Positions 1-33,014 of a stretch of DNA of 64,000 bases are shown one piece after another. Both the position numbers and the translations under genes were made by a program. The notes under the pieces were generated by a model. It did no database searches. It was not told the origin of the DNA and saw only the letters and a list, made by a program, of their open reading frames with translations. The stretch is from Orbicella franksi (Eukaryota). The first letter of the stretch is position 1, and each line of letters begins with the position of its first letter. The stretch lies in NCBI GenBank assembly GCA_964199315.1, contig OZ116698.1, forward strand, positions 30,194,001 to 30,258,000, written 5' to 3'.

Positions 1-889
1 CGCATTGAACTGATTAAGGATTTTCTCTCTCTTATAATATTCTAAAGCTTCAAAATTCGGGCATGACAACACGTTTGTGTTTATGCTGATGATAAGCTAT
101 CGTCTGTAAATAATCATTTTTTTACAGTTAATCTCAATGTATATTTCGTTGACAAAAATATAAATGCTTCATAGTTAGGTAACCACAAATTTGAATCCAT
201 TCAAAATTAACCCTTTAGTTTGACCAGTTTTAGTTAAGACATTGATCCATATTAGAACAGATTGCAGCGTAGAGATCGGCTAGATGAAGCTTTTACTGAC
301 CCAGTCACACTCTTTGTCTGACGCAGCTGTTTAATATTTATAATACTGGCTTTCTGGTTCTGATGGTTCTCAAAGGGATTGAAAAGTAGTACTTTTTGTT
401 TTATACCTTAACTAGGCTCTTTCGTGGAACTTGGAAGGTCGCAAATTATCTTACTTTCCATTCGCGAAAACATCGTGTGACAGACTTGTCTCCAACTCCT
501 CGTCAATAATGCATAAGTATGACCACAATACGAAGGAAGATCCAGTTTCAACTTCAATACACATATAACTCAATCATATTCATCAAACTAGTTCGTTCTC
601 TCGGCGGCATTCGTCCAACAATCATACGTGAGTCAGCTGATTCTCTTTCAACCATCTACCATCTCTTTTGACGAAAAAAAATCTCTTTTGTCCATCTATG
701 CTTCAAATCTAGGGTCACACTTAACTGTTAACACGTGCACAACGTTTGCCTGCGCCAAATAATCGACATTCTCCATGATCGGATAAAAGTTCAACAAAAT
801 GGTTTTTTCTCCAAACTCCGATATTAGTCTTATGAATTATAATGAGCAGTAATAGCCTTTTCGATTCATTGTGTTTTTCTTCGTTACAG

Positions 890-3800
890 AAATGTTACCA
901 GGCCCCTGTGACGACGAAGCAACATGCTGTCGAGGCGAGAGCGGAACAGTGTAGCAAGTTTGACAACACGTCTTTCAATGGCTACTTCTTTACTTGGGTC
1001 CCTTACTTGGGCGGTGAGACTAAAACCTTAACAGTTTTTTTTTTTTTTAATCTTAAGCTTAAAAACGCATCTTAAAAGAGGAAAATAAATGTCAAACAAT
1101 CGCTAGAGAGGTTCTGCTTCTTAAGTAATTATACAAGGACAAAAAAAGATCGATGGCAATGGAAAAAGATCTAGGGATTAATTATAAACAACTGTACAAT
1201 CCGGCAGAAAAGAATGGAGAAGTTTGTCGTGGGAACCTTGTACCAAGCTCACAACTCCGGCGACAAACCTAGATTATAGAGACATTTCAACTGACTGCTA
1301 AGTCCGAGGAACAGTAGAATTTCGAAATACGTGTACTCTTCAGAAATTTCTGCATCCAAATATTTGCAACTCATCTCTAATAATTTCGACCGTTCAGAAA
1401 TAGCAGGTTGTTTCATTCAGTAAAAATTTTGTGATCGTTTCGCGAGGTTAAAAAATTATTTTTAACATTTTCATGACTATGTTTATTAAAGTTTGCAAGA
1501 GAACAAAATACTGAAACTAAGGTTTTGTTTATACTGCAGTGAAGAATAGCGATGAATGTGAGCTTTACTGTGTGGCTAAAGGATTCAGGTTCTTTCGTCG
1601 TCTCTCACCAAGAGTGAAAGACGGAACACCTTGCCTCAGTGATTTAAAAAAAGTCTGCATTAGTGGAACATGCAAGGTATGTACTATACTCATTGGGAAA
1701 AATCAAATGAGAGATGACTGAGGCTCCGTCCACCAGGCTACGCCGGACAAATATGAAAACGCAGCTTTATTTCAAAGTTAGGCCCACCGTCCACACTAAT
1801 CCGTCACGAAAACGGAGCTTTTTTCGGTAAATTATCTGTTCGAAAGGCCTTTAATCCCCTCTGATTTTCTTAAGAGAATTGTCACCGCGAACTTTCGTGA
1901 TATGAGAAATTTAATGTCTGTTGTCTTCGGATTGTTAAAAATGTCGTTTTGGGTACCGAAAAAAGGTCAGCTATCATTTTCTGAAAGGCGATAAGATCTT
2001 AGGTTTTCGGGGAAATGGACAAAAATGCCCTAATAAATTCGAGAATACTCAAGTTCCCTTAGAATAACCGAACAGATAATTCTTTTTAAGCGCAACCTAA
2101 AATTAACCTACAGAACTTTAAAAGTACCCCAGATAGCCTAAAACAGCGCTTAAAAGCATTCGAGAGAAAACGGTGGTTGGGTGCCCCTGTTGTCAAACCG
2201 GAGGAATTTGAAAACGCCGGCTTTTCGTTTTTGTGTGGACAGACACATTTTAAAAACGGAGCTTTTAGTAAACGATGAAGTCACGATAATGTGATTTCCC
2301 TGTCCGAGTTTTACACAAACACAAATCCAAAATGACCGGTGATTGTTGCGTTTTTAAATTCCTCCGGCGTAGTGTTGATGAGGCCTGAAGCACATTTTGA
2401 GAGGTACTTCATTCTACTCCGGTAACCATCAACTGTCACCGGCCAGCCATATCCGGCCAATAGAACTGAAGAATACCTTAACTACAGAGTTTGCGTCTCA
2501 TGTACCTTGCCGTTTTATTTTCTAGGAGCTCCCCTCAAGGTGTAAAGATGGCGGATGTTTTGGTCAGAAGCGTGTGACACCAAAGCAAAGGCGATCTGGT
2601 GTTTTTACGTCAAGAGACGTTTCTCGAGGACATCTGAGTATGTTTGATTTCAAGTGATATCAAATGATATCTTCCTGGCTAGTGCACAAATGCACCCTTG
2701 TGTTTCAAGCTCGCTTAACATGTCTATGTACGTTCTTTTGTCAGTCTTAGGGTATAATCCTGTGATCACAATTCCTGCTGGTGCCACTAACATTAATGTC
2801 ACAGAGATCCGCAGAAGCAAGAATTATCTGGGTGAGCTTTTCGGCTGGTCTAGGCAGAACTGATATCGATGTTAACATTAAATTCCTGAGCCATTAGTGA
2901 AATCAATGAATAGGCCGCACTTGTTAAGCTCCGGCTCTTTTGTTCATTTGTCGATTTCAGTTTTATTTGTGAGCAACGGTTCTTAAAGTTATAGATGAAT
3001 CAGGGAACAGTCTGTAATTAGTGCACTGTCGCTCTTATAAGATCAGTTATGTTCTCTGCTACCCACTATTGTACCTTTAACATTGTGAAATGGCAGAGGA
3101 AAACCAAGAACAGAGCCAGGGGAACTCGGGCGCAAATCTGTAATGGAAAACTAATGATTTGGTGACTAACTTTTTCAGGGTTAAATTTAACATTGGTTTC
3201 GTCCTACAAATTCCAGTTGTAATAGATTCGATGATAGATTCAATTTTCACACTATAGAATAATGACTTTGTGTTCCAAATTTCATAATTGTTTTCAGCTC
3301 TCAAGTCACATGATTCAAGCAAGTACTACATTAATGGAAACTGGGTTATCGATTTGCCTAAGGGTTATGACGTAGCTGATACAACTGTGTATTACACAAG
3401 ACCCCGTAGAGACAAGGGCGAGAATGAGGCGTTTATTGCCGCTGGGCCAACGTCTGAAGGTCTTGACGTTATGGTAAGGAGAAATAAACAAATTACTTTG
3501 AACGCAAAAATTGTAACGGTACACTTCTCGTCACTATTGACAGACAAAACAGGGCACTAACATTCTATCAGATTTAGTTTCGAACTCTCTGCTGTTCGCA
3601 GATGGACTTTTAGGTTTAACTTCGGAAAAGATGTCACACTGCGTTGCGTTAGTAGATGGTAGAATTGTTAGAGTTTTTACAAAAATCGAAAGAGTTGGTA
3701 CGGTTAAATCAGACTTGAGCCGTGTAACCTGGCTAGCACCAAGAAATCGAGACGTCTTAATTGTCTCAATGGAGTTCTAAAAATGTAATTTAATGCAGTT

Positions 3801-6800
3801 GACTCAGGCTCAGTTTTCTCCTCTGTCAACTATCCCACAAAAAAAATCCTGGTGGTCGCAGTTTGATAATTAAATATGTCATGTGCTTTCTTGTCTTGAC
3901 AGTTGCTTTATCAAGCTGACGAGCCTAGGATCATGTATTCGTACCTTCTTCCTAAGGACTACCCTAAAAAACGCGATAAAGAACAGCAACAACCCGCAGA
4001 GCCCAGCAATTTTGGTCAGAGAGGGTTCAAGTCCCAGGCTACCCAACCACCACCCAACGGAAATACTTATGCTTGGAGACTAACAGGGTTTACACAGTGC
4101 ACCCACTCATGTGCAGGAGGTACATTTAATAATACACAAACCTAGCCAAGACCATTTCACCTTTTTTTTTAAAAAAGTGGATATCACACTTGTGACTTTC
4201 CTAGTTTATTGTTATCAAGTATATCACTTGTTAAATAAGCGAAGTTTTGCTGTAAACCGTTGCGTCTCTCCTGAATTCGGGTTAATAGACTGTTTAGCCA
4301 ACAATAATAGATCGAGAATATTTTTACTTTTTGGAGCGTGTCAAGACTGTCTTAGGAATGATGTTTTTCAATATAGTTTTGTAAGTAGTATATGACACTG
4401 TGTTATAATAGTTGCAAATTAGACCGACAGAAGTGTTGAATACGACGCCCAGCGGAGTATTTAGGACGAACTCTTTATCGTTTGGAAATGTGATGAACGT
4501 GTTTGTTTTTTTTTGTTTGTTTGTTTGTTTTTTTAATGTTATTGCCTCACAGGACACAGAATAAATGATTACAGTACTAGATACTACTTGGGAATAACTA
4601 CTTACAGAGCTGACATTAACTATTGTACTAGACGAAACTTATTATTCTTACAGTACTATACTTACAATGTTCACACTAATAGTGTATACAGCACCTTTTA
4701 ATCCACAAAAATAAATCTAACACATTACAATAAAAAGAAAAAAACAACAACAACAATGAAGATGGTACAAAAGGGAAGAAAACGAAACAGGTGTTTCAAG
4801 TGTATTGTTAGGTTGATTACTTATAGCATTACTAGTATGTGCGAGTGAAGATAAAGAGCAGATTGCTGTGAAAAGCTCGTAGGTGACAGCGTATGTACGA
4901 GATGGTTGGCAAAGTTGATAGCTGCAAACACTTCAGAGGAAGTGATGCTATCTATCAGTAGGTATATATTCTGCAAGAGGTTCCCATTTTTCCATATCGC
5001 CGCTTTTTGTCTCCAACTCGAGCCTTGATTTCAGAAAGCGTAGATAATGGTCAAAGTTAGGGGACATTTCTTTAGATTTGGCTAGCCAGATATGACGTCG
5101 AGCTAAAAGAAGGCAATAGTTAATTTGAAGTGCAAATTTTGACGTTTCCGGTTTCAGACCAAACGTGTTTGTGATACGTTCTTGATCGAGAAATGGTAAA
5201 AATGTAGGACCATTCGTAAACATGATTTATTTTCAATTATTACTTGTTTGTAACTGTCAGAACAACTTATTCCAACGTTTGAGTTCTCACTTCAAACAAC
5301 ATCAAACCGAAGGATACTGACTCTCTAACTGACGAAATTCGTATTTCCCAATAGGCATTCAAACAACGGTGTACCAGTGTGTTACATCAGCTGATAACTC
5401 AGTTGTTGAACAGTCCCTGTGTCAATGGAACTTAAAACCAGCTCAACGACAGAGAGTCTGTAACCTACAGCCTTGTTCACCAAGGTAAACTAACATCAAT
5501 TGTATATTTTCCGTTTGCCGGCTGGGCTTCTCCTGCTATACTCATTGCAAATGGCTTTAACCAAGAAGTATCAGTAGTTTGCCTTCTGAAACTGTTCGTG
5601 AGTGACGTTTCTAAAATTTGAGAGATAGACATGTTCTGTGTTAAGTGATTCTGCCTGACAGGAAGAACGAAAAAGTACCATGTAAAAATATGCCGCATCA
5701 CCGAAAATAAAAATAGTCATCGAACGATTTTCTTCTTTTTGGACTGTTTGTTTGCCTGCGTGCACAAGTCTACTATTTCCTTTCACACGGATATTTGGTT
5801 TTTCACCGGAGAGGTCAATCTTGGTGTGGTTTGGGCTGACACAAATTTACGTCTGAAAAAAACTAAAACAATTCACCTCAGTGAAGGCTTTTGGTTTCTA
5901 GCACTGCCAGGGATGTCATTAAAGTCCGAAATTAGAGCCAAATTGAAGAATCCGAGAGCCTGTTTGTGAGGCTGTTCTAACCACAGCGCTGTCTGTCTGG
6001 ACTAATAAGTTCCCATTTTCAATGCAGGTGGGAACCAGGAGAGTGGGGTCAGTGTTCTAAGACATGTGGAGCCGGTATGCAGATCAGAAGTCTTCTGTGT
6101 AAACAGCTTGTTGATAATAATGGTGTCAGGAAACAGCAGATGCTACCGATCAGCTACTGTCGCCAGTGGGAGAGACCTGCACCCAGCCGCAACTGTAACT
6201 TACAGCCCTGCCCTCCTCCGGCAAACTGGACAGTCGGGGAGTGGAGCAAGGCACGTCACTTTCAGTTTTTCTTCAAAAGCAAATTCTGGCGTTGAACATT
6301 TAGATATAGCGAAAAACTCTTCGGAGTTGTCCCATGGGCAACACAATTAAGCGCCGCAATAGGTAGCTGGCTGACGTTTCGAGTGTTAAACCTTCGCCGA
6401 CGCGAATCCGATTGCATTTTTTCTCTCAACTACTTCCTGATCCATCTAATTCCGCTAACTTTTTTTTGACTTTGTTCTACAGTGTTCCGTGACATGTGAA
6501 AAAGGAGTCAAACAGAGAGTCGTGTCTTGTGTGGATATCAAAAATACCACAGTCAAGGAAAGGTTCTGTAAACACAATCCAAAGCCACCGACAACAGAAT
6601 CGTGTTTTGCTGGTTCCTGTAAAACTGACTGGGTTGTAAGCCACAAGTGGTCTCAAGTGAGTGCTCAGTATACATGCCCAATTGCAGAACAAAGCATACC
6701 GTGATCACTATCATAATAAACCGACGGCATATCGACTACCCAGAAGTCTGCATGCAGTCTTGCCAATTTTCCAGGTCTAACACCGTTTGAATCTGTTATA

Positions 6801-13772: not shown

Positions 13773-16700
13773 ATGGAGGCTGCTTTGGTACGTTTACCTC
13801 CTTCACGGTGTGAGGAAAACTCAGGGCTTCGATGAATATTATAATTATTGTTAAAGTTTTTATGTTTTTGTTACTTTATAGGAGGCCCTTAGATCGGTCT
13901 CCGATACAGATCAAGCCAAAAGTGCTCTTTCTTTGATACAAGTCTATGTGAACAACATAGTGAAAGATCCAGTGAATCCCAAATACAGAAAAATTCGAAT
14001 AAGTAAGTTTGTTAAAACGTTTGATATTTGTAAGTTAAATTGCTATCTAAGCGTTTTTAGAAAGCCTCTATTAAAGAACGTTCTCCTTATAACCCCATTT
14101 ATACTGGCATAGCAGTAATATCTTGTTCTCAGTGTTATTGATGTATACGCACATGTACGGACACAGGTACCCCAAGCTCGACACACGAGCTTCAGTCTGT
14201 TCTGTGTATGTCAAATGCAGCTGTAAAAATCATGTGTAAGTCCCACGCATCATAAATATAGCTGATTTCAAAAGAATTGGCGAGCCTTTAATATCTGCGA
14301 TGAGCTCCATCGGCTCTGATGAATCAGTGATCCAGTGAGGACTTACACTTTTGTGTGGCTACACATAAGCCAAGGTGCTCAAAATAAGTGTAGGGATGGT
14401 CCACACAGAAGATGCCAAAAAAAAAAGAGTGTCCAGTGCAGTTGGGGCTTTTTTTGAAAAACTGGAAAAGGAGAATTAATGAGTTTTCATCTTTTTTGCA
14501 TATATATTTTTTTAAAAAAAGGGGGCCTGGATACCGGGATAGTTCCCAAAATTTACCACTAGAGATCAGATGAGCCAACTGGTAGGTCATTAGTGCTGGT
14601 ACTAATACATGTAACTCCGGTTTCTGTGGCATGAAAATGTCAGCAAAACTAAATTGGGCTTTCAGAACCATCACAGTATAATTATCCTATCACAGTGGTG
14701 CCTTGACAAATTTTTAAATGGACTCTGTACGCTCATTTAAAAATGAGTGTACACTGTACTTTTAACTATTGATTTCACTGTTCATGATTGACTCAGAATT
14801 ACATCAATTTTCCTTTTTCGTTGATGTTGAAAAAGATCTATAGCCAGTGTTCAATTACCTTTTCTCTTGTTAAAATTAAATTATAGGCAATCCAAAGTTT
14901 AACACAGTCATCTGGCAGCTGGAACAAGCAAGGACATTTTTGCTGTTTTCAGGATTTGAGCAGGTTTAATTTTCATGTATAACTTACAAAGTATTTTTCT
15001 TTCTGATGTCACAACTCTACAAATACAAAATGTTTGATTGTAGTAAAGGTGCACCAATTGCATTCATAGTTATGTATATATGTGTACTTGTGTAGTTGTT
15101 GGTTTGTATGTATATGTTTTGTTATTTTGTTGAATAGAAAAGGGAAAATAACTGCTTCTTATTAAATCATGCAAGTAGTTTGATGAAAATGCTTGAAAAA
15201 GCTTGGAACAATTTGAATCACCCAAGTCCACATAAACTTTCAGACTTTTGCAATATTAAGTAGAAAACAGTCCTAAGAAAATACGTATGCTGATTGCTTA
15301 AAAATTGTGTTTCTATAACTCAATGGAAACACAGAGCTACATGTAGCATGAGCTGTTGACATTATGATGGTGCAAGCAAAGAGAATGTACATTTTGATGA
15401 TCAAAGTAAACAAGTTGTTTTTCTTTTTTTCGTCCCGGTGTTTTCTAAAAGAAATAGTTCTCTGTGTTTCTATCGAGTTATAGAAACACTTATGAGAGTT
15501 TGGGAGAACTAAACTTCCACTCGTGTTTCTATAACTCGATAGAAACATGGTACATGTTTTCTATTTCCTAAATAAAGGTAAATCCAGCAGTTTATATAGT
15601 AGGTGTCTGTAAAGTGGGATTTGACTATATATAGATATAGTCTGACATTTACCTTTTTTACATGCAGTGTATGGATATAGTAATGTGATTATATAGTGCT
15701 GTCTGCTTTTGTTTCAGGAAGGTGACTTTTTGGTTCTTCCATCCTCTATAAAACTAGATGGAGCCAAGTTGTTGATTGATGAAGCTCTTGGTATTTTACC
15801 ATCAAATCAAACAAGTCATGCTACCAGCGCTTCTTCAAATACAAGTCAGGCTAGCAGTGTGCTCAAGCTTAATACACAAAAAGGTAAGATGTTATTCAGT
15901 ATAAGCAATTTACTGGTATTTAATACACGGTCACAATCCTCTGATTAGGGATATTTCTCTCATTTAGTGGCAACTCTTATTACCAGTGGACACTTGTTCA
16001 TGGCCCAGGCCACACTCTTGTACAAATTATGTCAATTTTACAGTGTATACACATGTGGATTTGTAACCTCTATACATGTACACTGTGCACTGTAGATTGT
16101 AACCTCTGTACATGTATACTGAAGATTGCACACCGTATATTGCTTAGTATACAACCCTCTGACAAGAAGTGTACATGTACATGTAGGTTTCCTTTCCATG
16201 ATAATTTTCCCCCAGCCCTCTTCTGTTACAAGGTACAGACTAGCATATATTTTTAATTAATATCTTTTAAGGTAAAATAGAAACATTTGTCCCTTAATCT
16301 TATGGCAGCTGCAGTTAAGCAATGAGACTACATGGTCTCTTTTTTTCTTCTTATTGATTTTGCTCTACGTGTACACGTACCTTGTACATGCACCTGTTTA
16401 TAGAGATTTTTCTATGATCTGGGAAGCAATGATTTATATCATGACATGACGTAAATCATGATGTTATGGTGTAACCTTTCTGAGTGCGGTCATAATATGT
16501 ACTGTAGTAAATAAACAATAGCCTCCATTTGGCATGAAAATTAATACCCTTGGATATTAATTTTGTCCATGAATATTATCTGTTGAGAGAACAGGCAGTA
16601 GGGAGGGTTGGTGTGTTATCGGGATTTTCCTTCCCTAGGTAGTTGCCTTGTAAGGTTGACAGGTACAGTATTAGCCCCCTAGGTTTTGGCTTGGAGATTT

Positions 16701-19700
16701 CCATCCCCTAAATGGGCTGCTTCCCATGGCTAGTGAGCACTGTTGCCCAGGGTGTGGTCATTGCAGTGCCTGCAACTTCCAGGAGCCATACATGTATGTC
16801 AGAGCTGGCTGTTGCATGTGGACCAGTGCAGTTAAGCCACTCTGGGAAGAGTGCAACCACCCCCCTGGGAAGAGTGCAACCACCCCCTGCAGAGGTACGA
16901 CCACACCCAGGCAAGCCATACTCCCCAGTTTTAGCTGGGGGCATATTCAGTCACATGACACGTTTAGACCAATCTCATGCAAGTGGAAATATTTGATGCA
17001 TTATAATTACTGATATTTCATTGATTAGACTCTAGTTTGTTTGATCAAGATGTGAAGGCAGATCTTACCTTGCTCTCCTACATGAAAGAAATGGGTATGT
17101 TCACCATTAATTTACAATATTTATTTGATTTATCTTTTTTGTTGTAGCACCTAAAACAAGGTCATTGTTTTCAGTTTTTTAGTCCTGTACGTGATGCAAT
17201 GTTTTATGCAACTTGTCTCACAGTGCTTTCTGAGACAAGACCTGCAAGAAGATTGAAAGGTGTGTCCAACGTAACAGGGGAATACTGTTTGTTTTGCTTG
17301 TAGGTTATGATATTGTTGTCGCAGAGATTGCTTTAATTGCGACTAAAAACAAGGGGATTCAGCCAGCTATTGATTGGTAAGAGTTGATTAATGCGCTACA
17401 AAGTCTTCTGGTGAATACCTATTTTGAAAGATTTACACATTTTTAATAGGTAGGACAAAAATTATGGTGATAATTTACTGATTGAACGATTGATCAATAG
17501 ATCCATTGCTAGAGTGATGAAATTTTCAGAAAGGGAACCATTGTCAAACTGCTTTTAGTTACTGGATTGATACTTTATGTATATGGTCCACACTGCTAGC
17601 GCTTATTCTAACGCTACTCCCCATAGATGAGATGCTACATGTACTCCACCACAAGGTTATCCTGCCCCAGCAGGTTTCCATTTCAACTTTAATTAGCAGT
17701 ATGCATTTTATACTCTTGGGTGGAGAGAAGAGTTAGACCACCATAAAACCCACAAATTATCATGTTTACATACAGTACCACATACATACAAAGCATCTGA
17801 TCTCTATAACTATATTGCCAAAGTACATTATTATTCACTTGAAATAGCCAATTATTACTTGTACATCTTGTGTCTTTAATTTCACCCTACAAGGATAAAC
17901 CAGAATCCTAATAAAGCAACCTCAATAAAGTTGCAGCAATCAGGGACTAAAGTGGTAGCTACAGATGTACTGCAAGGTGACGCACATGATGTCAGTCAGC
18001 ACTCACTTGCAAGTAGCTCTTCACCTGCTGTAAGTTAGGCATATACAATGTACAAGCAGTTGTTATAGATGTATATCAAACCATCCAACCCAGCAATGAT
18101 GGTTTAATTTAGTAGAAATTCATGTGCCATGTTTTAGGATGAATATCAATTGCAATGCGAATAGATTTTGTCATGGATAACAAATTTGTGAGAGAATAAA
18201 ATAGAAACACTTATCAACCTAGTTTGTCATTTCATTCTGAGGGAAGATTTGTTCAAGCAATAATGTCAATTGTACAGCTAAGTATTAATTTAAACAGGTG
18301 TGTGACCCTCTCTATAATCAAGCATGTTGTTTCAATGCAATGCAATTCAAGCGTTTCATTATTAATTTATTTTTTGTAGCCCACACCGGTGCAATCTAGA
18401 TTCCAAAAAACACTAGATGAGAGGCACAAGTTTCAGGAAAGACTCAGGCTGGAGGCAATTGAGGAGGCAAAGTATGACAACAACCCCTTCGCATGTACAT
18501 TTAACTAGTGTCATTTTCTTAGATATCGTTATAAGTTTAAGCACAAAAGACTGACTCATCCATTCCTCCTCTAACCTAGTTTGGTGACCAGTACATCCTG
18601 TATCTTTCCTCATGTTACAAGTGTATGCTATGTGTACGTTGTTGTGCTTGTTAATTCCTACTAAATTTCTCATTTCCCAAACATGTGCGGTAACAATAAA
18701 CAAGAGGGGAGAGTGGTAAGGGTCAGATCACTACCAGGTTTTGACTTACCAAGTTGACTTAAGGTCATTCCCCAGTATAGGAGAATCTTTGCTTACAATA
18801 TTTGCCTCATTACCATAAGTGATACAGTTTCTGATGGAGCTACAAAGAGATTAATACTGAATATTGAAAGGGCACAGCACGATTAACTGTCCCAAGGAAT
18901 TTGAGTGCAATGTATCAAATACTTTTTGTGTGACGAGGGTTTAAAAGCTCAAAATTTTACAAAGAATGTATGAGCTCATTAGCGCTTTTGCCACACAGAA
19001 ATTTTGATGTTTTTGAAAGCCAATTTCTCCTCGAATATTACACCCAAAGAGCCAAAAATTTCACCACTTACTAAGTTTCACAAGCTCTTTAAGTTTTTCT
19101 AGCAAAATTGTGTCTAGCGTGATGCCTTCTATGCACAAAGTCGTATGTTTATGAGGAAAAACGTAAACAATGACGTCAGCAAAGATTCGCCTATTGCATT
19201 GCGCATCCTTACTGCACATAATTTATGGCGTCATTAGCATGCATTTGTGCACACACACATTGAAAACATGGCGGATTTGCCTTGATATTGAGTTCTGTCA
19301 GTTGAAAAATGACTATAGCTCACTAATGAGCTCGGGCACCCCAAATTTTTTTCCAGTCGTTTTAATCAACTAATCATTAGCTTTGCATGAGAAAAGACTG
19401 ATCTGATTTCTTTGTTGAAAATTGAATATTAAGTAAGGAAAATAGAAGCTGCACTGTAGTCTTTTCTATTTTGCAGTTTGATAGCTGTGGCGAGCAATTT
19501 GGTTCCAATATTTTAACAAGGATTCAGCTGTCTGTCAAAATCAAACTTAAAAAGTTTATTTGTGTCCAACGCAAGTATTGACTGTAGTTTGAGGCGTGTT
19601 TTCATGAGTCTGGGCTCACAAAGAGTTTACAATAACTTGGAATGTGTTCTTGTAATAAGCATTACATAATGCTAAAATGGGACATTTTCAATGCCTCGCT

Positions 19701-22700
19701 GCTCCTTAACGAGCATGGGCACCCCCCTTTTTTATTTTATAATTAAAGTTCTCATTTGGTAAATATTCATTGGACAAAGTTTGAACAAAAATCTATGTGC
19801 AGTTTAATTTCAGGGGAACTACCTTAAACCCTGCCATAACTGAATTCAGTCATATTATAAAGTTATTTTCATGTAATAATGTAATTGTTTTGTGGATGTT
19901 TCATAAAGTTGTGCATTGTTCTCACATGTTGACCTCATGAAGAATCAAGTCAGAAAATAATAAAATGGAATAATGACCTCAAACATACAATATGTGTAAA
20001 ACATCCAGTCATTGACAGCCATCAGGGTTATTGAAGTAATATATCAAACACAAAAGACCATGTTTGACCACATTTCCAAACACTGAGAAGAGAGCTGAAA
20101 ATATGATGTGTAGCAGGGTATTTTTGACGAACTTTGAGGTGTTTGGAAATTTGGTCAAACACTGTCTTGAGTGTTTGATATATCTTCTCAATCAAAACTT
20201 AAATTAAGGAGAAGATGGAGAAAGAAAATCGTAAAAACCTATGCTAATTTTAAAAGATCAGATATCCAAACATGGTCACAGTCATGATCTCCTTTGTTCA
20301 AACGTGATGAATTATTAATGAGTTCGAGAAGTGTTGATAAACCTGTATCTATTTTTTGCAGGCTGGAAAAGCAACGGAAAAAACTTCATAAGGAAAATTT
20401 GTTGAAAGATATGAAGGATGAAAAAGATGAAAAGTTAGAAAAGGTATGATCAAGACTTACTAGTGATAGAAAATATTCTAATTTTCTGTACAGTTAATGA
20501 CCACTGATAGAGTGCCTTTTTTGAAAGAAACACAAGAGAAATATAAAGTACACCGAGGTCAGGACTGGGGCTGTATACTTTATATGGTATACATGTTGTA
20601 ATCATGTACAATGTAACCCCGTTAATCAGGTCACCAACTGGCCGCAAAAATCTGGCCATATTAGCAGGGTGGCCATATTAAAGGAGTCCTTTAAATAAGA
20701 AAATGACTGACTGAGCTTTTGTTTGGGCCAAAATATAGTGGCCGTAATAACGAGGTGGCCATATATACAGGGTGGCCATAAGGCAGGGTTCCATGGTATA
20801 ATTAACTGACCACAGTTAGGCAACAGTTGGCCAACAATCAGTTGACAAGAGGTCAACAGATGGTCAACAGTCAGCTATTGGCTTTTGGCTGCTGTTTTTA
20901 TCTTTTCCCTTATGTTATTGAACTAGTGCAAGATCTTTAATACTTTGGTCCAGTTGTCCTTCTTGCAAGATTTAAGGACTAATACAAAGGACCACTGGTC
21001 AGATAAGATCTGCTAGTTTTGCCTTATAGAGACAGTAAACTACAGTATATGTTGTGCCACTCATACTTGACTGACAAACAAAAACTATATCCACTTAATA
21101 TTTTAATGCATCAGATGACATGCACTACCCACATGCCAGCTAAAACAATATCAGCTCACAAACCACTGATACATTAATTGGTAGGGCAGGCATTTTTTTT
21201 TAACCACTCACTACTAATGGTTTAGTCATGCAGGTCATACACTACCAACATAACAGCTCTTAACCTGCATGTCATCCCACACCCTTCCAATATACATTGC
21301 CTGGCACACCATCAGTGTATTGTTAAATATTTACTCAGGAAAAAATGTCTCAAATTATTAGTATTAAAAGCAAACTGGAGAGAGCTGGTTTCCTGAAGTA
21401 AATGTATGCACAAAGTAATGCTCTTATATAACTTACTACCAGGCAAAACATGCAAAACTTACAGAGAACACAGGTGAAGCATCAAACAAGGACATTATTG
21501 GTCAACAGAGTGGTAATAGTGATTTGCCAATGGTGGAATTGAGAATAAGAATTCCCGATGGTCAGGTATGACACATGTCAATATCCTGTCACACAGTTTC
21601 ATTGTTAAAGATTTATATGTGGCATGGCTCCTGAAGGAGAGACAAGCAAAACGTTGATGCCCTGATGATGGAATGATATTTACTTATTTAAGCAACATTT
21701 TATGAGAAATGCTGCACCAGCACATGTACACTGTACCTGTTAGTGTGTAGTAATTAAAAGAAAATATCACATAACTCAGACCTACATGTAGAATTGATAG
21801 ATTACCAGATCAAATGAAGTGTGAAGGCACATAATTTTCTTTTAAACATTCTTGTTAGTGGAGAACCAAGAATACAACAATGAACATTGTTATAATTTTG
21901 TCAAATCTAAAACTATAATGATTATGATTACATGTTCTTGAAGAGTTTGGTTTTTCTTCTCTTAAACAAGACCCAGAGATCAATTGACAATATACAAACA
22001 GTCAACATTGTAGTCTGGGTGAGTGATTGGCTGACAAATTTTTGTTTCCCTTTTTACCTTAGTTTGTTTTTTTTTCAGGTCTTATTGCTTAGTCTTCCTA
22101 ACAACACAACAATTCAAACATTATATCAGTGAGTAACTAGCACCTTTAATCAGCTAATGTCATTATTGTCCACTGGAATTTTCACACAAACTTTACATGA
22201 AATGAAAACTATTTTTGACAAAATAATCTATAGAGCGCTGTGAAATTCCCCCCCCCCCCCCCAATTTCTGTTATAAACAATACCTGCGACCTACAGGAAG
22301 TTCAAAGCAGGTGCACTGTTCAAGGATGATTTTTCTCTTTTGTATTACTCATTATTACCATGTATGTACCGGGGGTAGGGGCATTTGATCACCTAGTATG
22401 ACCGTAAGGTAGGGCATCTGGACACCATTTTTGGCCTGTGGGAGGGGAATTTGACCTAACTGAAAGTTCAAAATATCTGCTGCCCAGAAATGAGCCCTGG
22501 GGAAGGTTGATGTTGAAGTTTCGAATTCACTAATACTTTATGAAAATTCACCACTGAAGGAGAGAGACATAAAAATCAATATTTGATTTATTAACTTTAA
22601 TTGGCTTTTTTTTGTTTGTTTGATTATTGTTTTGTTTTCTTAGGGAAGTAAAAAATCACTTGCCATCAAATGACAGCCTAAGCCAAGATGACTTTGTTCT

Positions 22701-25700
22701 CATGACGTTGTTTCCGCAAAGAAGAATCTCTGACATGGAGAGTACCTTAGAATCAGCAGGTGAAACAGTAGTAAGATTACATTCAAACTCTCCTGACCGA
22801 TATTCATGTGTTTTATATAATTCACCTTGTAAGAATATGAATTTTAATAGACCCTTTCCTGTGATGTTCACGTTTACAGTTTTCCCCCCGCACATGTTTT
22901 ACACTTACGCTTATATGGTTACTTGAAACTTCGGGACGATTATAACATAATTATTTGCAAGGAAGATGATCATTATCCATTTATTTTTTACAGTCTTTTA
23001 CTTTCTTATCTTTCACTTGGATAGGTGTATTTCCTTTGTTTCGTCACCTGCCATCCGTTACTCAATAATGACAAAATTTACCGATCCATTTTAAAAAGAT
23101 TAAGTCCTAAGTTAAGCTTACGCTTAATTTTGGTCAGAAGCTTACCTTTGTTTCATGGCGGATAATTTGCTTCTTTAAACGCCCGATTGCATAAACTTCC
23201 GTTGTTGACAATTCTAGGGAAAGACAAAGGTGTTATCCTCTTAATAGGGAGCTTAAGCAAACCACGACGACGACGGGATCGAGACGCCACCAAACAAAAG
23301 ATTTGATGAGTAGAACAATGGCTGTGCACGTGCGTTATAAATCTTTGTACATTTCTTTATTGTCCTCTGCAAAACAACAACGTAAATGATCACGTTCTGA
23401 GTAGTCTGAGGAAAGGGGGACGACTAATTTTTCGTATTTCCATTTGGAATTTAGCTTGAGCACATTTTTAGAGCCAATGGTAAAATATAAATTCATTTTT
23501 GATTAGGCGTCGTCCTCGGCGTCGCCGTTGTCGTTGCTCAAGCTCCCTAGTGCTTGTTCAGGGTACTAACGGTAACTCGTTTAAGCCGTTCAGCTATTTT
23601 TTAGTCCACGTAGATTTGCTTCTTCGAAGTATTACTCTTGTTTGCATTGTAGAGCAAGGAGATAGGTTGACAAACGAATTAAGACTAGGCTAGGTAATTG
23701 CTTATTTGCCTAACATTTCCAACCGGTTCGTAGAAAAACGGGTGGTTTATCCGATTTCAACATTTGTACGTGGTAAAAAATAACATTCAAGGCAATAAAA
23801 CTTGAGGTAAATGACTTACGTAAAAACCTACCTCTCGACGTTCAAAACGCGAGTCGAAAACCTCAAAAGTGACGTGACCTCTAGCCGTTTGCCGTGGATC
23901 TCTAATTTCTGCTTTTGACCACTGTGAACTTAGCACGTGCAAATTCCATGAGGATTTCTTTACGTTTTGCATAAATTTGAACCACAAATGCTCAAAAATG
24001 GCTTGGAAACCCACTAAAATTACAGTGGCGACGACACCACGATAGGAACGCTGACGAAAACGTCTCAACTGAAACGAAGAATAATGTGCAGAACAAGGGC
24101 TGTACACATGCGTTATACACCTTGGTACAGCTCATAGCCGTCCTCTAAAGACCTTAAGAGATGGTGACGAAAATTTTCAACTAAATGTGAAGGAAAGATA
24201 TAAACTGTTTTGTAACCTTTCTTCAAGTCTTTGCGAAGAACATACTGACTTGGTTGGCTTGGATGAAGACAGTTTTGCAACTTGTTACTTCGCAAAAGTG
24301 GACGTTAATACAGAGGCTGGCGGGAGGGGGCAGTGTATAAATATAAAATTTACTGTATTTATATAAATTTTTGATTTATTAATTTAAAGGTTTGGCCCCT
24401 CGTGCGGCACTTGTGGTACAGAGGACCGATCAGCAAGGTGTGCTTACCCAGGGGGAGGGCGCAGGTAAAGTTTTTGTACTTTGTTATGTCATTGTTAGCA
24501 CACGGTTCAGCAGTTTTATAGGGTTCTAAGTTGAGCACGTGTTTAGCGAGCTAGAGACACCATCCCCTCCCGCTTACTTCGAGCTCGAACGAAAACCTCG
24601 TTGTAACCGTCAGGAGCTTTTGAGGACTGGGCAAACCTTGCACCATTGGGTGCAATAAATGACCGCAATACTGTGAGCAGCGGTAGCCTCCATAATCACT
24701 TTGTGAGATATTATTATTCGTCGTTTCGTGCCTTAAAATTCGGTAAGCCTAATCCCTAACCTAAACACAACGATCTTTTTTCGATATTTCCCCTGAGACC
24801 AAAGGAACTACTGTAAGAATTCGATTGAGTGCTCGGGGTAGCCCAAGTGTGAGCACCTATTGGAGAAGAGACGCTAATTAGGCACGAGGCGCTGATTTCT
24901 TTGTGAACATGTACATCGAAATGTGGTACAGTACTTTCATGAAAACCAACACAGATACTTTAATTCAAGAACTGTAACAATAGGAGCTCTGATGGTCACA
25001 CTGATGTTCAATTTTACCTTCAGAGATGAGAAATCAGACCTCATAATTTATTTGTCTTATGAGTCTATTCTATGTCAATTAATGTCTTGGATGTCACTCT
25101 CGCTATGGGTGTGCTTATTAAAAAGGGGGCTCTTATTGGAAGGAAAGGCACGAATTTGACAGCATGGAAACAGAAAATACTAATCTCTGAACTTGACCTC
25201 GATTGTTTCGTGCGTCACAAGACGTGACTTAATATATCGTAAAGTTACCCCTTTATACCTAAACATACACACATGACGCTGGTGAATCACTTTATACGTG
25301 CCCAACAGCACTCGTAGATGTCCCTCGGACTGCATGGCTGCCATGTGCAGTTGACGTCCGTAACAGAACATTTCATTGAAGTTTCTATCGCTATACCTTA
25401 TCAAACTATTGTTTTGTCTAACTATTCAATAACGTTAGGAAACATCTTGGAGTATTGATTGAATTGAAAGGCGGTAATTTTGGCAAGTATTTCGAGAAGT
25501 GAATTTCACCTGAATGCATATTCTGCGTCATTTAAAACTAGTGTTACGACAGAAAAAATCTGCTCGCGTGTTCTCTGTCTGCAAAACGATTTGATTGGTT
25601 CACAAACTCGCCAAATCACATGGCGGGAAAATGCTGACAGAACACATACGCAACGCTTCAACTAAGGACACGTGATTACAAGTCTTTAATCGAGAGGCTT

Positions 25701-28700
25701 CGTAACATCCATCGACAACTTTGTGAACGTTAAAAAATGTGCATTTGGTGTGACAAGGATTCGTTTTTGTTTCACTGCAAATTGATTAAAACGCAAAGAG
25801 ATCATCACGAAGTCTCGTTTTACATCATCCATTTAAGATTACCAACTGACTGAAGGCATGCTTGGTATATTTTGTTTCTCTTGTAGTTTTTTTTTATTTG
25901 TTTTTCTTTTTTTTATATATTTTTTTTTTAGTGTGAAATTTAAATCCACTGTTTTTGTTTTGTTTGTTGTTGTTTCTTCATTTTTTTCTCCTGGCTTGGG
26001 TTCTGTAAAATAACCAAGATAAAAAACACATTAGCAAGTTGCCGTAATTTCACCGTTTTGGAGCGAATTCCATCATGTGCCTTTGACAAACAACTTTACG
26101 CAGAGCTTGTGTAATGCGACCTTTTAATGATCTTTTACACTACATTTATACCCCAGGGTATTGCGCCAAATATTAGTACCGGCCCTCTAGAAATCTACGA
26201 CCATAACGACCCCCCCCCCCACCCCCCTGTCCAAGTTAGTAGAAACATACAACATTTACACCACATTCATTAGACGGAAATACCCCGCATGGATTGCCAA
26301 ACACCTATTTCTTGCAAAGGTATTCTGATTTTTCACTGAGCTGGTTATCAACTTCACTAGGACTTAATAAAGGTAATACAACCGCCGTAGCCAATTTTCG
26401 AAGCTGAAGTTTCAAGCATTAGCTCTGCCCAGACGAAGCCGGGTTGACGCTCGACGTCGACGTCATTTTCCTTCATCAACTTCATGTTAATATACAGATT
26501 TGTGTTAAACTTGCCCCTCGTCGACGCAGCCAAGCAGTTTCTCTGGGAACTAAACCCTATCACTCTCTTTTCTTCCCGTTGTAAGTGACACCACTCCAAT
26601 CAACTCCTTTCTTGAGAAGGAATTTTACTTTAGTTATAACTTGTAACTGAGACGGGTCTTTGTCAACTACATTATCTAAACTGATGTGTGATGTGTTTTC
26701 TATTTTAGTATATAGCGTAAGAAATGTCGCAAAAATGGACGATTGGCAGGAATTATTGAGTGAGCAAGGCAAACTTATTGTTGTCAAGTTTTACGCTTCT
26801 TGGTAAGTTCAACTTTCATTATGGCAAACACAAAAAGCTTCAATCACTGTCATAAGTCGTTGGGAACACCCAACCCCTTACTCATTTCCTCGATGCAATG
26901 TTAGATAGCGCAAGACACCAGAACTCTCTTTTCAGGGCGTCTTAGTTTCTAAGCAACACGTAAAGGTGAGAAAGGTAGAGACAATATACCAACAATGTGT
27001 AAACCTTTGTCGTTTTCAGGTGTTCCTTGTGCAGATCCGTTTCAGACGCATATGATTCTCTGAATGCTAGTTATGGAATGAACGGAAAAGTGTTGTTTGC
27101 ACGGATCAACGTCGACGAGTTAAAGGTTTGTCACTCTCATTAGCGTTCATATTGCCTTAGTTTGAGAAGAAAAATTTCGTCTGCGTTCATTAGGGGATAA
27201 TACAGAAACTCCTTTTGCCGGATCTCGCTTTCCGTCGTTCAAGAACGTCTCTAACACGCCTGTTCTTCGGGCTATAAATGAGTACAGATTTCTGTCTAAG
27301 TTTTCATTAAATCATTCAAAGTTTGTGATATATGGGGATGTGGATGCATATTGTAAACGTTTGATTCACATCACAAAAATTGAAGATGGGGTTAATTAAA
27401 ATAAACGAAATAAAATAAGGTGATTAAAGTTGTGCTGAGACACTTTGAATTTTCTGGTAAGTAAGTAAGTAAGTAAGTACTTTATGTAGACACATTTCAC
27501 CAGTGAGCCTGGGGCTGGTTAAACGAAACTCCTTCTCTTACTTCGAAATCAAGGAGGCGTGAAGTCTATATTTGCCTTGTGGCAAGTACGTGGTCCTTGA
27601 GTCACTTATAAGGTCCCAGCTGGTGATTAACCTGGCCGAAGCGACTGAACGTAAAGAAACGTATACCGTCCCGTCCTTCTCTCTCACCCTCTAAAATCAG
27701 TGTTCATATTTTATTTACAAGGTGTTGAAGTTCCAACAAAGAGTCACGTCGCTGCCCACATTTAAACTGTTTTGGAACGAAAAGGTACATAGTTTGTGTT
27801 TGTTATAATTTCTCTGTGTATTGCATTCCTGTTCGACGAAGTTTCACCTCTCCTTTGAACAACCACTCAAGCCGCTGTTGAATGGTGGAGCTGGTGTTCG
27901 ACATATGAACAATGTACCCTTGTTGAAAGCTCTTTGTAGAAAAGTTTTGACATGTATAGAAAATGCGTCTGGATCGACGCGCAGTCAGACGGAAAAGCGG
28001 ACTGTACTGTATAGGATTTTGTATGGAGTTTGAATGGGTTTTCTATAGACCTGGTATGGGGTTTTGTATGGCGTTTGTGTGGTTTTAGTATGGGTTTTGT
28101 ATGAAGTTGGTATGTAAAGTTTGTATGGACTTGGTATGGAGTTTGTATGGAATTGGTATGGACTTGGTATGGACTTGGTATGGACTTGGTATGGAGTTTG
28201 TATGGACTTGGTATGGACTTGGTATGGACTTGGTATGGAGTCTGTATGGAGTTTGTATGGACTTGGTATGGAGTCTGTATGGACTTGGTATGGAGTCTGT
28301 ATGGACTTGGTATGGAGTTTGTATGAACTTGGTATGGAGTTTGTATGGACTTGGTATGGACTTGGTATGGAGTTTGTATGGACTTGGTATGGACTTGGTA
28401 TGGGTTTTGTGTGTGTTTTTGTGATTTTGTATGTTGGGCTTTGTATGGAGTTGCTAGGTTTTATATGGAGTTTATATGGGTTTTGTATGGGTTTGGTATG
28501 GGTTTGGTTATTGAGGTTGCATGGGGTTTGGTATGGGTTTGCATGGGTTTGGTATGGATTTGGAATGTAGGTTGTATGGGTTTGGTATGGGATTGTGGTG
28601 GGTTTGGAATGGAGGTTGTATGGGTTTGCCATGGGTTTGCTATGGGGTTTGGTATGGGTTTGTATATGTTTAGTATGGGTTGGTATGGACTTTGTATTGA

Positions 28701-29181
28701 GATTGGCATGTGTCTTGTCTGAGTTTGGTACGGGTTTAGTACGGGTTTGGTTGGTGTGGGTTGGTATGGGTTGGTATGGGTTTGCTATGGGTTTGGTACG
28801 GGTTTGTTATGGGTTTGCCATGGGTTTGCTATGGAGTTTGATATGGGTTTGTATATGTTTAGTATGGGTTGGTATGGACTTTGTATTGAGATTGGCATGT
28901 GTCTTGTCTGAGTTTGGTACGGGTTTAGTACGGGTTTGGTTGGTGTGGGTTGGTATGGGTTGGTATGGGTTTGGTCTGGGTTTTGTATGAGGTTTGTATG
29001 GGGTTTTAATTACTAAAAGGGTGATCTTTTTTTGGGTGTTACTAAGGCGATAGCTCATGTAGAAGGAACTGGCATGGAGGAATTGAAGCAACAAATTGAG
29101 ACAAACATAGATGGACCAAGGAACACAAACACGCAGGAAGAGTCGTCAACGGATGATCAGTTGGACCATGACCCTAGATAA
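13773..29181 (+). CDS. PUB-UBA-coiled coil-UBX-thioredoxin multidomain protein (p97/VCP cofactor-like), 529 aa
   Basis: 17 GT-AG exons with continuous phase: 13773-13787, 13882-14002, 14887-14963, 15718-15883, 17029-17094, 17304-17376, 17894-18029, 18380-18471, 20362-20443, 21443-21565, 22079-22128, 22644-22759, 24390-24464, 26709-26802, 27020-27125, 27722-27784, 29047-29181 (1590 nt). PUB: YVNNIVKDPVNPKYRKIRISNPKF...LLFSGF. UBA: MKEMGYD...ALIATKNKGIQPAIDWI. Charged coil: ERLRLEAIEEAKLEKQRKKLHKE. UBX: ELRIRIPDG...TIQTLY...LMTLFPQRRI...TLESAGLAPRAALVV. Trx: LIVVKFYASWCSLC...FARINVDE...VTSLPTFKLF. Confidence 0.88.
15301..15570. mobile_element. Foldback/MITE-like repeat fragment
   Basis: Repeated, mutually inverted motifs GTGTTTCTATCGAGTTATAGAAACAC / GTGTTTCTATAACTCGATAGAAACA; ends in CATGTTTTCTATTTCCTA. 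Confidence 0.6.
17610..17730 (-). mobile_element. Decayed SINE fragment (same family as 60301-60600)
   Basis: The reverse complement resembles the CTCTCCACCCAGG...ATAAATG...CCTGCGATGGACTAGCATC core of the full copy. Confidence 0.45.
18763..19823. mobile_element. Kolobok-like non-autonomous DNA transposon
   Basis: TTAA on both flanks (18759-18762, 19824-19827). Termini GGTCATTCCCC...GGGGAACTACC form an imperfect TIR starting with GG. TTAA TSD with RR...YY ends is the Kolobok pattern. No transposase ORF. Confidence 0.7.
20036..20340. mobile_element. Interspersed MITE-like repeat, copy 1
   Basis: Clearly similar to 46549-46835 (AAGTAATATATCAAACAC...CACATTTCCAAACAC...TGACGAACTTTGAG...CAGATATCCAAAC). 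A partial third copy lies at about 4435-4500. Confidence 0.8.
20609..20796. mobile_element. Tc1/mariner-type MITE (TA-flanked, GGTGGCC subrepeats)
   Basis: TA|CAATGTAACCCCG...CAGGGTTCCATGG|TA degenerate termini and repeated GGTGGCCATA motifs. Confidence 0.55.
23247..23547. mobile_element. MITE with GGGAGCTT(A/G)AGCAA TIRs
   Basis: 5' GGGAGCTTAAGCAAACCACGACGACGACGG and 3' CGTCGCCGTTGTCGTTGCTCAAGCTCCC; TA on both flanks. Confidence 0.85.
28000..29010. repeat. G/T-rich satellite (10-11 bp TTGGTATGGAC / TTTGTATGGAG units) with a 189-bp higher-order duplication
   Basis: A homogeneous 11-mer array at about 28105-28400. A block starting at 28621 recurs at 28810. It lies in the last intron of the PUB-UBX-Trx gene. 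Confidence 0.95.
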
Positions 29182-32453: not shown

Positions 32454-33014
32454 ATGACGCAAAATGGTAACCTGCAGAACAGAATTGGCAATCTTACAGG
32501 GGATAAAAACGGATTATCAGCATTTAGACCCGTCAGATCAAGAAAACAGACGTGCCCTCAGCTTTTACCTGTCCTTTTAGGACGCCAAAACAGCCAACAT
32601 GAGTATAATATTCACGACAATCCTCTTGCCGCTTTAGAGGGCTTTGTAACCAACTACTTCTGTAGAGAGTCTGCTTTAGAGCCTAATGAAGTACTCTTAT
32701 CGAAGCAGCGACGTTCATTGACTCATAAACCTCGTCAAGAATCATTGCCGAAAAAGAGTGTATTCACCGACATACAAATTCAAACACTGGAGGAAAGTTT
32801 CCAGTTTAAACAACATTTGTCACCAAAATCTAGAGAATGGCTAGCGAAACTTGTTGGTCTAACGAAGCGTCAGGTCATCACATGGTTCCAAAACAGACGC
32901 GCCAGAGAACGGAAAAAAGCGGGTGTTAAAATGGCTAAACACGGCAAAAAGTGCGTCGCAAAGGGCTTCAAAATTCCAGAAGTACATTATCAAGTATACA
33001 GAGCATTTCGCTGA
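32454..33014 (+). CDS. Intronless, divergent Lbx-like (ANTP/NKL class) homeobox protein, 186 aa
   Basis: Homeodomain at about 32742-32921: FTDIQIQTLEESFQFKQHLSPKSREWLAKLVGLTKRQVITWFQNRRAR. QVITWFQNRRA is the Lbx helix-3 signature. The upstream motif NPLAALEGFVTNYF resembles the Lbx SPLCALEELASKTF motif. Confidence 0.88.
   Translation: MTQNGNLQNRIGNLTGDKNGLSAFRPVRSRKQTCPQLLPVLLGRQNSQHEYNIHDNPLAALEGFVTNYFCRESALEPNEVLLSKQRRSLTHKPRQESLPKKSVFTDIQIQTLEESFQFKQHLSPKSREWLAKLVGLTKRQVITWFQNRRARERKKAGVKMAKHGKKCVAKGFKIPEVHYQVYRAFR

Follow-up and report, generated by a model that had tools for sequence, protein, structure and literature searches.

We examined a window of 64,000 nucleotides of the stony coral Orbicella franksi (GenBank assembly GCA_964199315.1, contig OZ116698.1, positions 30,194,001 to 30,258,000 of the forward strand), which is the whole stretch of DNA analysed and the one to which all positions refer. 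Between positions 13773 and 29181 its plus strand carries a gene that probably encodes a cofactor of the unfoldase p97/VCP resembling UBXN1/SAKS1, with a PUB domain added at the N-terminus and a thioredoxin domain added at the C-terminus. The gene was rebuilt independently from the stop-free stretches of the plus strand between 13.5 and 29.4 kb, by scoring of AG and GT sites and by comparison with the divergent coral locus L012. The rebuilt model comprises 17 GT-AG exons with a total length of 1590 nt and encodes 529 amino acids, from an ATG at 13773 to a stop codon at 29179-29181. It reproduces the exon count, the protein length and the order PUB, UBA, coil, UBX, thioredoxin (WCSLC, LPTF) given by an earlier reading made from the letters alone, here called the sequence-only reading. 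The motifs WCSLC, SLPTF, LRIRIPDG and FPQRR are visible directly in the translated sequence, and the protein is of a soluble type, without an obvious signal or membrane segment. The parts of the gene are as follows:

13773-13787, plus strand: exon 1, ATG and four codons (MEAAL); the ATG context is kept in L012 (MEASL); GT donor.
13882-14002, plus strand: exon 2, first part of PUB; Pfam PF09409 with 33.0 bits, E = 5.6e-8, profile positions 2-32; 70% identical in L012.
14887-14963, plus strand: exon 3, second part of PUB (NPKF...SGFEQ); conserved with L012:5043-5119; Pfam PUB positions 34-58, 16.2 bits.
15718-15883, plus strand: exon 4, end of PUB and a Ser/Thr-rich linker; 72% identical in L012, AG and GT sites kept.
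17029-17094, plus strand: exon 5, first part of UBA; peptide identity 100% in L012 and 90-95% in L014 and L016.
17304-17376, plus strand: exon 6, second part of UBA; Pfam UBA_7 with E = 0.022; kept in all lineages reaching that far.
17894-18029, plus strand: exon 7, variable linker; splice sites kept, sequence poorly so (ratio of nonsynonymous to synonymous divergence, dN/dS, 0.75).
18380-18471, plus strand: exon 8, first part of the charged coil; 89% identical in L012; single copy in the genome.
20362-20443, plus strand: exon 9, second part of the charged coil; 85% identical in L012; dN/dS of the coil 0.05.
21443-21565, plus strand: exon 10, linker and first UBX strand (VELRIRIPDGQ); kept in L012, L014 and L016.
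22079-22128, plus strand: exon 11, second part of UBX; conserved with L012:9841-9890; GTGAGT donor.
22644-22759, plus strand: exon 12, third part of UBX with the FPQR loop (22711-22722); Pfam UBX positions 32-68, E = 0.034.
24390-24464, plus strand: exon 13, end of UBX (GLAPRAALVVQR) and conserved linker (TDQQGVLTQGEGA); no stop, phase-1 donor.
24465-26708, plus strand: intron 13, from UBX to thioredoxin, 2244 nt; in-frame stop at 24527-24529 if retained.
26709-26802, plus strand: exon 14, first thioredoxin exon (first strand VRNVAK ... FYASW); Pfam Thioredoxin positions 5-28.
27020-27125, plus strand: exon 15, thioredoxin active site (CSLC at 27021-27032); Pfam Thioredoxin positions 30-61; single copy in the genome.
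27722-27784, plus strand: exon 16, cis-Pro strand (SLPTF; Pro at 27755-27757); LPTFKL invariant across lineages.
29047-29181, plus strand: exon 17, last thioredoxin strand and helix, acidic tail and DPR; stop at the same place in L003, L012, L013, L014 and L017.

A candidate for exon 3 at 15143-15225 could not be joined in frame and was replaced by 14887-14963 on the basis of conservation with L012. In L012 all 17 exons have their counterparts, with AG and GT at every projected base, and the spliced open reading frame (ORF) encodes 525 amino acids. The gene model lies far beyond chance, because the same 17-exon frame holds in L012 despite saturated synonymous sites (synonymous divergence, dS, of 0.97 between the window and L012). 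As had been read from the letters, the exon that ends the UBX domain (24390-24464) has no stop and leaves through a phase-1 GT donor that fits the first thioredoxin exon: exon 13 ends with a spare G before GTAAAG, exon 14 opens with TA after a pyrimidine tract and AG, and the joined codon is Val. The position of the thioredoxin intron had to be corrected, however, from between the W and the C of the active site to inside the Trp codon (TG/G, phase 2).

The domain assignments were made with Pfam matches that are partial and colinear and come from scans of single exons. PUB (PF09409) is matched by exon 2 with 33.0 bits and, colinearly, by exon 3 with 16.2 bits, the simple sum of which exceeds the cut-off of 34.3 bits; the PUB match of exon 2 was also recovered in a six-frame search of the whole 497 Mb genome. 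The largest of the four UBX exons reaches 14.8 bits against PF00789 (E = 0.034, profile positions 32-68), under the 21-bit cut-off. The first-strand Arg of UBX (LRIRIPDG) and the (T/S)FPQRR loop are present, and the loop reads FPQ[R/I]R across the five coral lineages described below; its middle residue is Gln and the R is displaced by one position, p47 carrying FPN at this place. UBA_7 (PF22562) is matched with 15.1 bits (E = 0.022) on an exon of 23 amino acids, and the sequence ...MKEMGYD...GIQPAIDW is 78-100% conserved. Exons 14 and 15 match Thioredoxin (PF00085) with 12.4 and 13.3 bits (profile positions 5-28 and 30-61), and the thioredoxin exons of L016 with 15.9 and 14.8 bits; in both cases the simple sum exceeds the cut-off of 23.5 bits. 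The ten best named atlas clusters for exon 15, found by protein-language-model features, all belong to the thioredoxin family. A profile search of the PDB with the 35 amino acids of the active-site exon returned no significant match, thioredoxins appearing at E = 0.2-0.6. Both the active-site exon and the coil exon occur once in the genome, which has four other PUB loci and at least nine other UBX loci; the gene is therefore additional to the usual set.

We compared the junction between UBX and thioredoxin in orthologous loci on the contigs behind single-exon ORFs of other corals, found by single-exon protein searches. These loci represent five lineages: the window clade (with the close relative L003 and with L004 and L005), L012, L013, L014 and L016/L017. 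The introns of L003 are ~73% identical to those of the window, and over the part between exon 12 and the stop codon, protein identity among the five lineages is 59-72%, at roughly equal distances. In all seven loci with the junction, covering the five lineages, exon 13 is exactly 75 nt long, with AG and GT at the same places and a phase-1 donor, and the acceptor of exon 14 consists of a pyrimidine tract and AG. The split junction codon is Val throughout, spelled GTA, GTG or GTT. The orthologous junction introns measure 2244, 2858, 518, 1521, 799 and 199 nt (518 in L012 and 199 in L016/L017), and cross-lineage comparison found no conserved block in them. The six nucleotide differences in exon 13 between the window and L003 are all synonymous; in the 26 nt before the ATG at 26735 the L004/L005 sequences have two variable sites, both synonymous third positions. 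Over the 23 codons spanning the junction, the proportion of synonymous differences (pS) is 0.44-0.77 against 0.18-0.26 for nonsynonymous differences (pN), in every deep pair. No in-frame ATG was found in exon 14 or its upstream open frame in L012, L013, L014 or L016/L017. The peptide read through past the donor at 24464 differs in every species, and its frame is unconserved in the ORFs of nine species, whereas the 13 residues before the donor (TDQQGVLTQGEGA) rank with the most strongly conserved stretches of the protein. Judged from these sequences, the PUB-UBA-UBX exons and the thioredoxin exons are one conserved gene, fused before the five lineages split. This gene would be translated into one fusion protein, because the junction phase, the Val codon and the lack of start codons are kept across the five lineages.

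The linker that results from the joining of the two exons, TDQQGVLTQGEGAVYS (24425-24463 and 26709-26716), outdoes much of UBX in conservation and reads DQ(Q/H)GV(L/V)(T/V)QG(E/Q)G in the five lineages. An SHP box was considered for this linker (QGEGAV), the GxG core being loosely alike. It was not adopted, since the motif (FxGxGxxh) has an aromatic residue that is missing here. Invariant across lineages are the linker core DQ-GV--QG-G, the FPQ of the UBX loop, LPTFKL with the cis-Pro, and the C-terminal DPR. Every domain is under purifying selection: between the window and L012, dN/dS is 0.12 for PUB, 0.08 for UBA, 0.05 for the coil, 0.20 for UBX and 0.15 for thioredoxin, and 0.4-1.0 for the two internal linkers.

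RNA reads were examined over positions 22600-27850 in two polyA runs, the raw run X24 and the small metatranscriptomic library X3, available as Logan contigs; a splice joint was listed only when at least three reads carried it. X24 contains the joints 22759>24390 (three reads), 26802>27020 (five reads) and 27125>27722 (six reads), the first of which is also present in one contig. The depth of X24 on the UBX and thioredoxin exons is similar and low (about 3.5-6.7x), and there are zero reads at 24536-26647. Neither AATAAA nor ATTAAA occurs between the donor at 24464 and position 24654, so the X24 transcripts cannot end at the read-through stop. In X3, on the other hand, the intron 24465-26708 is covered at 8-42x and the intron 26803-27019 at 15x, both of them empty in X24, while neighbouring introns of X3 are at 0-6.6x (0-2.4x in the unique parts of intron 12 and 0-6.6x in intron 15). 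An intron-retaining or overlapping transcript exists in X3. Its intron coverage could reflect a detained intron, an overlapping transcript or an internal start at the ATG at 26735. The RNA evidence alone is indecisive, X24 favouring onward splicing and X3 containing a transcript that retains or overlaps the intron.

Several observations weigh against a single fusion protein with a working thioredoxin. The sequence-only reading had named the 24464-26709 junction as the one to be checked in RNA. The joints on either side of it are recovered; the joint 24464>26709 itself is not listed, given the three-read threshold, a depth of about 3-4x and an exon 13 of 75 nt, and X3 reads through the intron. 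One X3 contig passes from the joint of exons 12 and 13 through the donor to at least 24781, and its product would stop at 24527-24529; another (26225-26804) crosses the acceptor at higher depth. In the window, an ATG at 26735 (MDDW) is a possible start for a thioredoxin without its first strand. This Met, which stands in a good initiation context, is limited to the window clade (window, L003, L004 and L005) and is replaced by Leu, Val or Ile elsewhere. The single-exon Pfam scores of UBX, UBA and thioredoxin lie under the curated cut-offs. The dipeptide between the cysteines of the CxxC drifts (SL, NL, SS, AL). Finally, the position which we take to be that of the buried Asp (Asp26) of classical thioredoxins, the x in VV-x-F(Y/H)A-x-WC, is Lys in the window, Glu in L003 and Gln in L012, L013, L014 and L017; a buried Asp is typical of classical thioredoxins, not of the whole fold family.

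Two further remarks concern these features. The idea that the CSLC dipeptide tunes the redox potential, put forward in the sequence-only reading, is weakened by the variation of the middle residues (CSLC, CNLC, CSSC, CALC). The ATG at 26735 could permit a lineage-specific thioredoxin-only product from intron-retaining transcripts.

The active site bears on a possible, though not the favoured, alternative in which the fusion is real and the thioredoxin is a redox switch or sensor, or a binding module that forms long-lived mixed disulfides, rather than a general reductase of clients. The buried Asp speeds the resolution of mixed disulfides, and its replacement by Lys, Glu or Gln would slow this step and leave room for a sensor or trapping role; the drift of the dipeptide between the cysteines points the same way. 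There are also parallels among known proteins, as the thioredoxin-fold UAS domain of UBX proteins is non-catalytic and has no CxxC (PMC8181520), and TXNL1 is reported to have a redox-independent chaperone role as well (PMC10570131). Against this, the Cys pair, the Trp before it and the cis-Pro motif do not vary among lineages whose synonymous sites are saturated: WC[S/N/A][L/S]C and (S/T)LPTF keep the Trp, both Cys and the Pro in the five lineages, the Cys having been checked in six loci. Together with the dN/dS of 0.15 for the thioredoxin domain, this is the pattern expected of an active oxidoreductase.

We consider it unlikely that the thioredoxin-containing form is a regulated or minor isoform, with retention of intron 13 normally giving a thioredoxin-less or non-productive transcript and splicing switching the thioredoxin on in some conditions. 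Such a switch would agree with the depth of X3 over the introns 24465-26708 and 26803-27019 relative to its neighbours, with the X3 assembled path that leaves exon 13 into the intron, and with the zero depth of intron 13 in X24. However, neither strand nor level nor the extent of one molecule can be read from contigs, and in a small metatranscriptomic library such as X3 a transcript that overlaps or runs antisense would give the same picture. The retained form would stop prematurely at 24527, ahead of three further exon junctions, and the strength of purifying selection on the thioredoxin speaks for production of the fused protein.

It is highly improbable that the locus consists of two adjacent genes, a PUB-UBA-UBX adaptor ending soon after 24464 and a small thioredoxin gene driven by a promoter of its own upstream of 26709, which gene prediction had joined in frame by accident. 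The X3 contigs crossing the donor at 24464 and the acceptor at 26709 (word depth 42 on the thioredoxin side versus 9.6), the well-placed ATG at 26735, a CRE-like (cyclic AMP response element) GACGTCA repeat at ~26450 and the unlisted joint would suit such a pair. In four of the five lineages, however, an ATG is missing both from the first thioredoxin exon and from the sequence ahead of it, the intron shrinks to just 199 nt in L016/L017 and 518 nt in L012, the donor, the acceptor and the phase are kept around a split codon that varies in its third base yet encodes Val throughout, neither the read-through tail nor the putative promoter motifs before the thioredoxin exons are conserved across lineages, and the X24 interval is empty of reads, with no poly(A) signal near the read-through stop.

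Outside the coding exons, one further element is shared with L012:

13473-13641, plus strand: conserved non-coding block, ~130-300 nt upstream of the start codon; 85% identical over 173 nt to L012:4357-4529.

This block is conserved although the synonymous sites are saturated, and the junction intron has no comparable block; it is probably the promoter or the 5' untranslated region of the whole gene. Scans of the gene region and of the upstream block with Rfam and for tRNAs gave no match. The block contains a 7-bp inverted repeat (GTGCCAG...CTGGCAC), and on its minus strand the sequence GAAACCGAAACT resembles the consensus of an interferon-regulatory-factor site (interferon-stimulated response element, ISRE).

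Two introns of the gene contain repeats. A high-copy interspersed repeat occupies 23128-23655 in intron 12, with 2932 first-look candidates in the genome and scored copies that are ~80-87% identical; RNA depth over it climbs to ~3500 in X3, and numerous loose read ends that belong to other loci gather there. The last intron holds a G/T-rich minisatellite at 28052-29002 with a period of 11 nt (TGGTATGGGTT, ~86 copies) and a higher-order unit of 189 nt. It shows a strong GC skew and long spurious ORFs on both strands, and the orthologous intron of L003 aligns with it. Downstream of the thioredoxin exons lie a homeobox gene (32502-32957, plus strand) and then a ligand-gated ion channel gene (35325-34459, minus strand), the arrangement and orientation of which are the same in the window, L003 and L012, a case of conserved microsynteny. 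A second, more distant paralogue of the channel is found at 45478-44552 on the minus strand. In L013 the region 234-4267, upstream of the UBX exons, carries intron-less ORFs matching DNA polymerase B type 2 (unmarked), Endonuclease_7 (weak) and Rho_N (faint), and looks like a Polinton/Maverick-like or viral insertion.

The order of domains suggests how the proposed cofactor could work. The UBX domain, through its R...FPQR surface, would dock on the N domain of p97, the PUB domain would grip the C-terminal tail of p97, and the UBA domain and the charged coil would retain ubiquitylated clients. The thioredoxin would be tethered at the unfoldase via the conserved linker of 14 residues, where it may reduce the disulfides of clients that need threading, or p97 itself, for example at the glutathionylated cysteine Cys522 of the D2 domain. 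Alternatively, it may report the redox state to the p97 complex or act as a redox switch. The literature offers precedents: the C-terminus of p97 is bound by PUB, UBXD1 attaches to p97 at both sites, proteins of the UBA-UBX class associate with the N domain along with ubiquitin conjugates, and oxidative stress glutathionylates Cys522 of p97, a modification that inactivates the D2 ATPase (PMC5389986). For the coral protein, p97 binding at two sites, client reduction, redox sensing and a link to heat or oxidative stress are all inferred. Carried further, and quite tentatively, stony corals may station a disulfide reductase on p97, with a PUB/UBX clamp across one protomer or two neighbours and a thioredoxin that keeps the D2 cysteine reduced, opens disulfide-locked clients, or both. 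The supply of this reductase might be gated by a detained intron at the junction, and the outcome would be redox-protected quality control under the oxidative load of the symbionts.

Several known systems share parts of this design. UBXN1/SAKS1 has UBA, a charged coil and a C-terminal-type UBX in the same sequence as the coral protein, but it is without PUB and ends after UBX, whereas the coral UBX exon continues into the linker and the thioredoxin. UBXN6/UBXD1 combines PUB and UBX in one cofactor, together with a VCP-interacting motif (VIM) in the order VIM-PUB-UBX, and binds both the C-terminus and the N domain of p97 (PMC5389986). It differs in using the VIM for the N domain, which the coral protein would bind by its UBX loop of the FP(Q)R type, and in having no UBA, coil or thioredoxin. 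The description of the coral protein as a doubly p97-anchored adaptor in the sequence-only reading fits the PUB-UBA-UBX hallmarks but has a forerunner, as UBXD1 already binds the N domain through VIM and the C-terminus through PUB (PMC5389986).

Thioredoxin-like modules are also known from the p97 and proteasome pathways. In C. elegans, PNG-1 joins a thioredoxin that is reductase-active in vitro to a protein of the endoplasmic-reticulum-associated degradation (ERAD) and p97 pathway (PMC8997433). PNG-1 is, however, a deglycosylase enzyme and not a UBX adaptor, and its thioredoxin takes the place of the PUB domain found in other PNGases (PMC8997433), whereas the two coexist in the coral protein. 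FAF1, FAF2/UBXD8 and UBXD7 carry the UAS domain, a thioredoxin-fold module within UBA-UBX cofactors of p97, but this domain has no CxxC, precedes UBX and senses fatty acids (PMC8181520); in the coral protein the CxxC is invariant and the thioredoxin follows UBX. TXNL1/TRP32, composed of thioredoxin and PITH, is a redox-active cytosolic thioredoxin docked on the 26S proteasome, a machine that unfolds and degrades ubiquitylated proteins (PMC12700798, PMC10570131). TXNL1 differs by docking through PITH on the 19S particle, by its classical active site and by having no ubiquitin-binding domain. A PITH domain of the TXNL1 type is absent from the coral protein, in which the thioredoxin is followed only by 24 acidic residues ending in DPR and then by the stop. 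This acidic tail with its invariant Asp-Pro-Arg C-terminus (29110-29178) is present in the five lineages and may be a binding site or a C-terminal degron.

The claim that no described protein combines all four domains agrees with our literature searches, which found none. Full-text searches yielded no description of PUB, UBX and thioredoxin in one protein, with no database-wide architecture search made, and the co-occurrences of the three terms referred only to the UAS domain or to unrelated text. Automatic annotations of the PUB-UBA-UBX-thioredoxin architecture may well exist in coral proteomes. An exhaustive profile search of 1.84 billion representatives with the UBX exon of 38 amino acids recovered nothing but single-exon ORFs from genomic contigs of corals; no full-length spliced protein was among them, and the result is therefore silent on the architecture elsewhere. 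When the junction exons were used in word-index searches, the matches were again genomic single-exon ORFs only, with no RNA-derived fragment across the junction, and a scan of Joint Genome Institute (JGI) metagenomes returned only close relatives, 86-100% identical.

To our knowledge, the cofactors of p97/VCP draw on a limited repertoire of binding modules, and we know of none described that carries its own redox enzyme. As far as can be read from the genomes, the conservation of the fusion in five deeply separated coral lineages suggests that protein quality control and redox chemistry are connected in a way not yet described. The case also illustrates that exon phase and start codons compared across metagenome contigs can settle a gene fusion where the read depth is too low. 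An adaptor with both modes of p97 docking, a ubiquitin receptor and a CxxC thioredoxin would give a testable connection between unfolding and disulfide or thiol chemistry, and would parallel the position of TXNL1 on the proteasome. For stony corals, the fusion would be a candidate for a role in the response to heat and oxidative stress.

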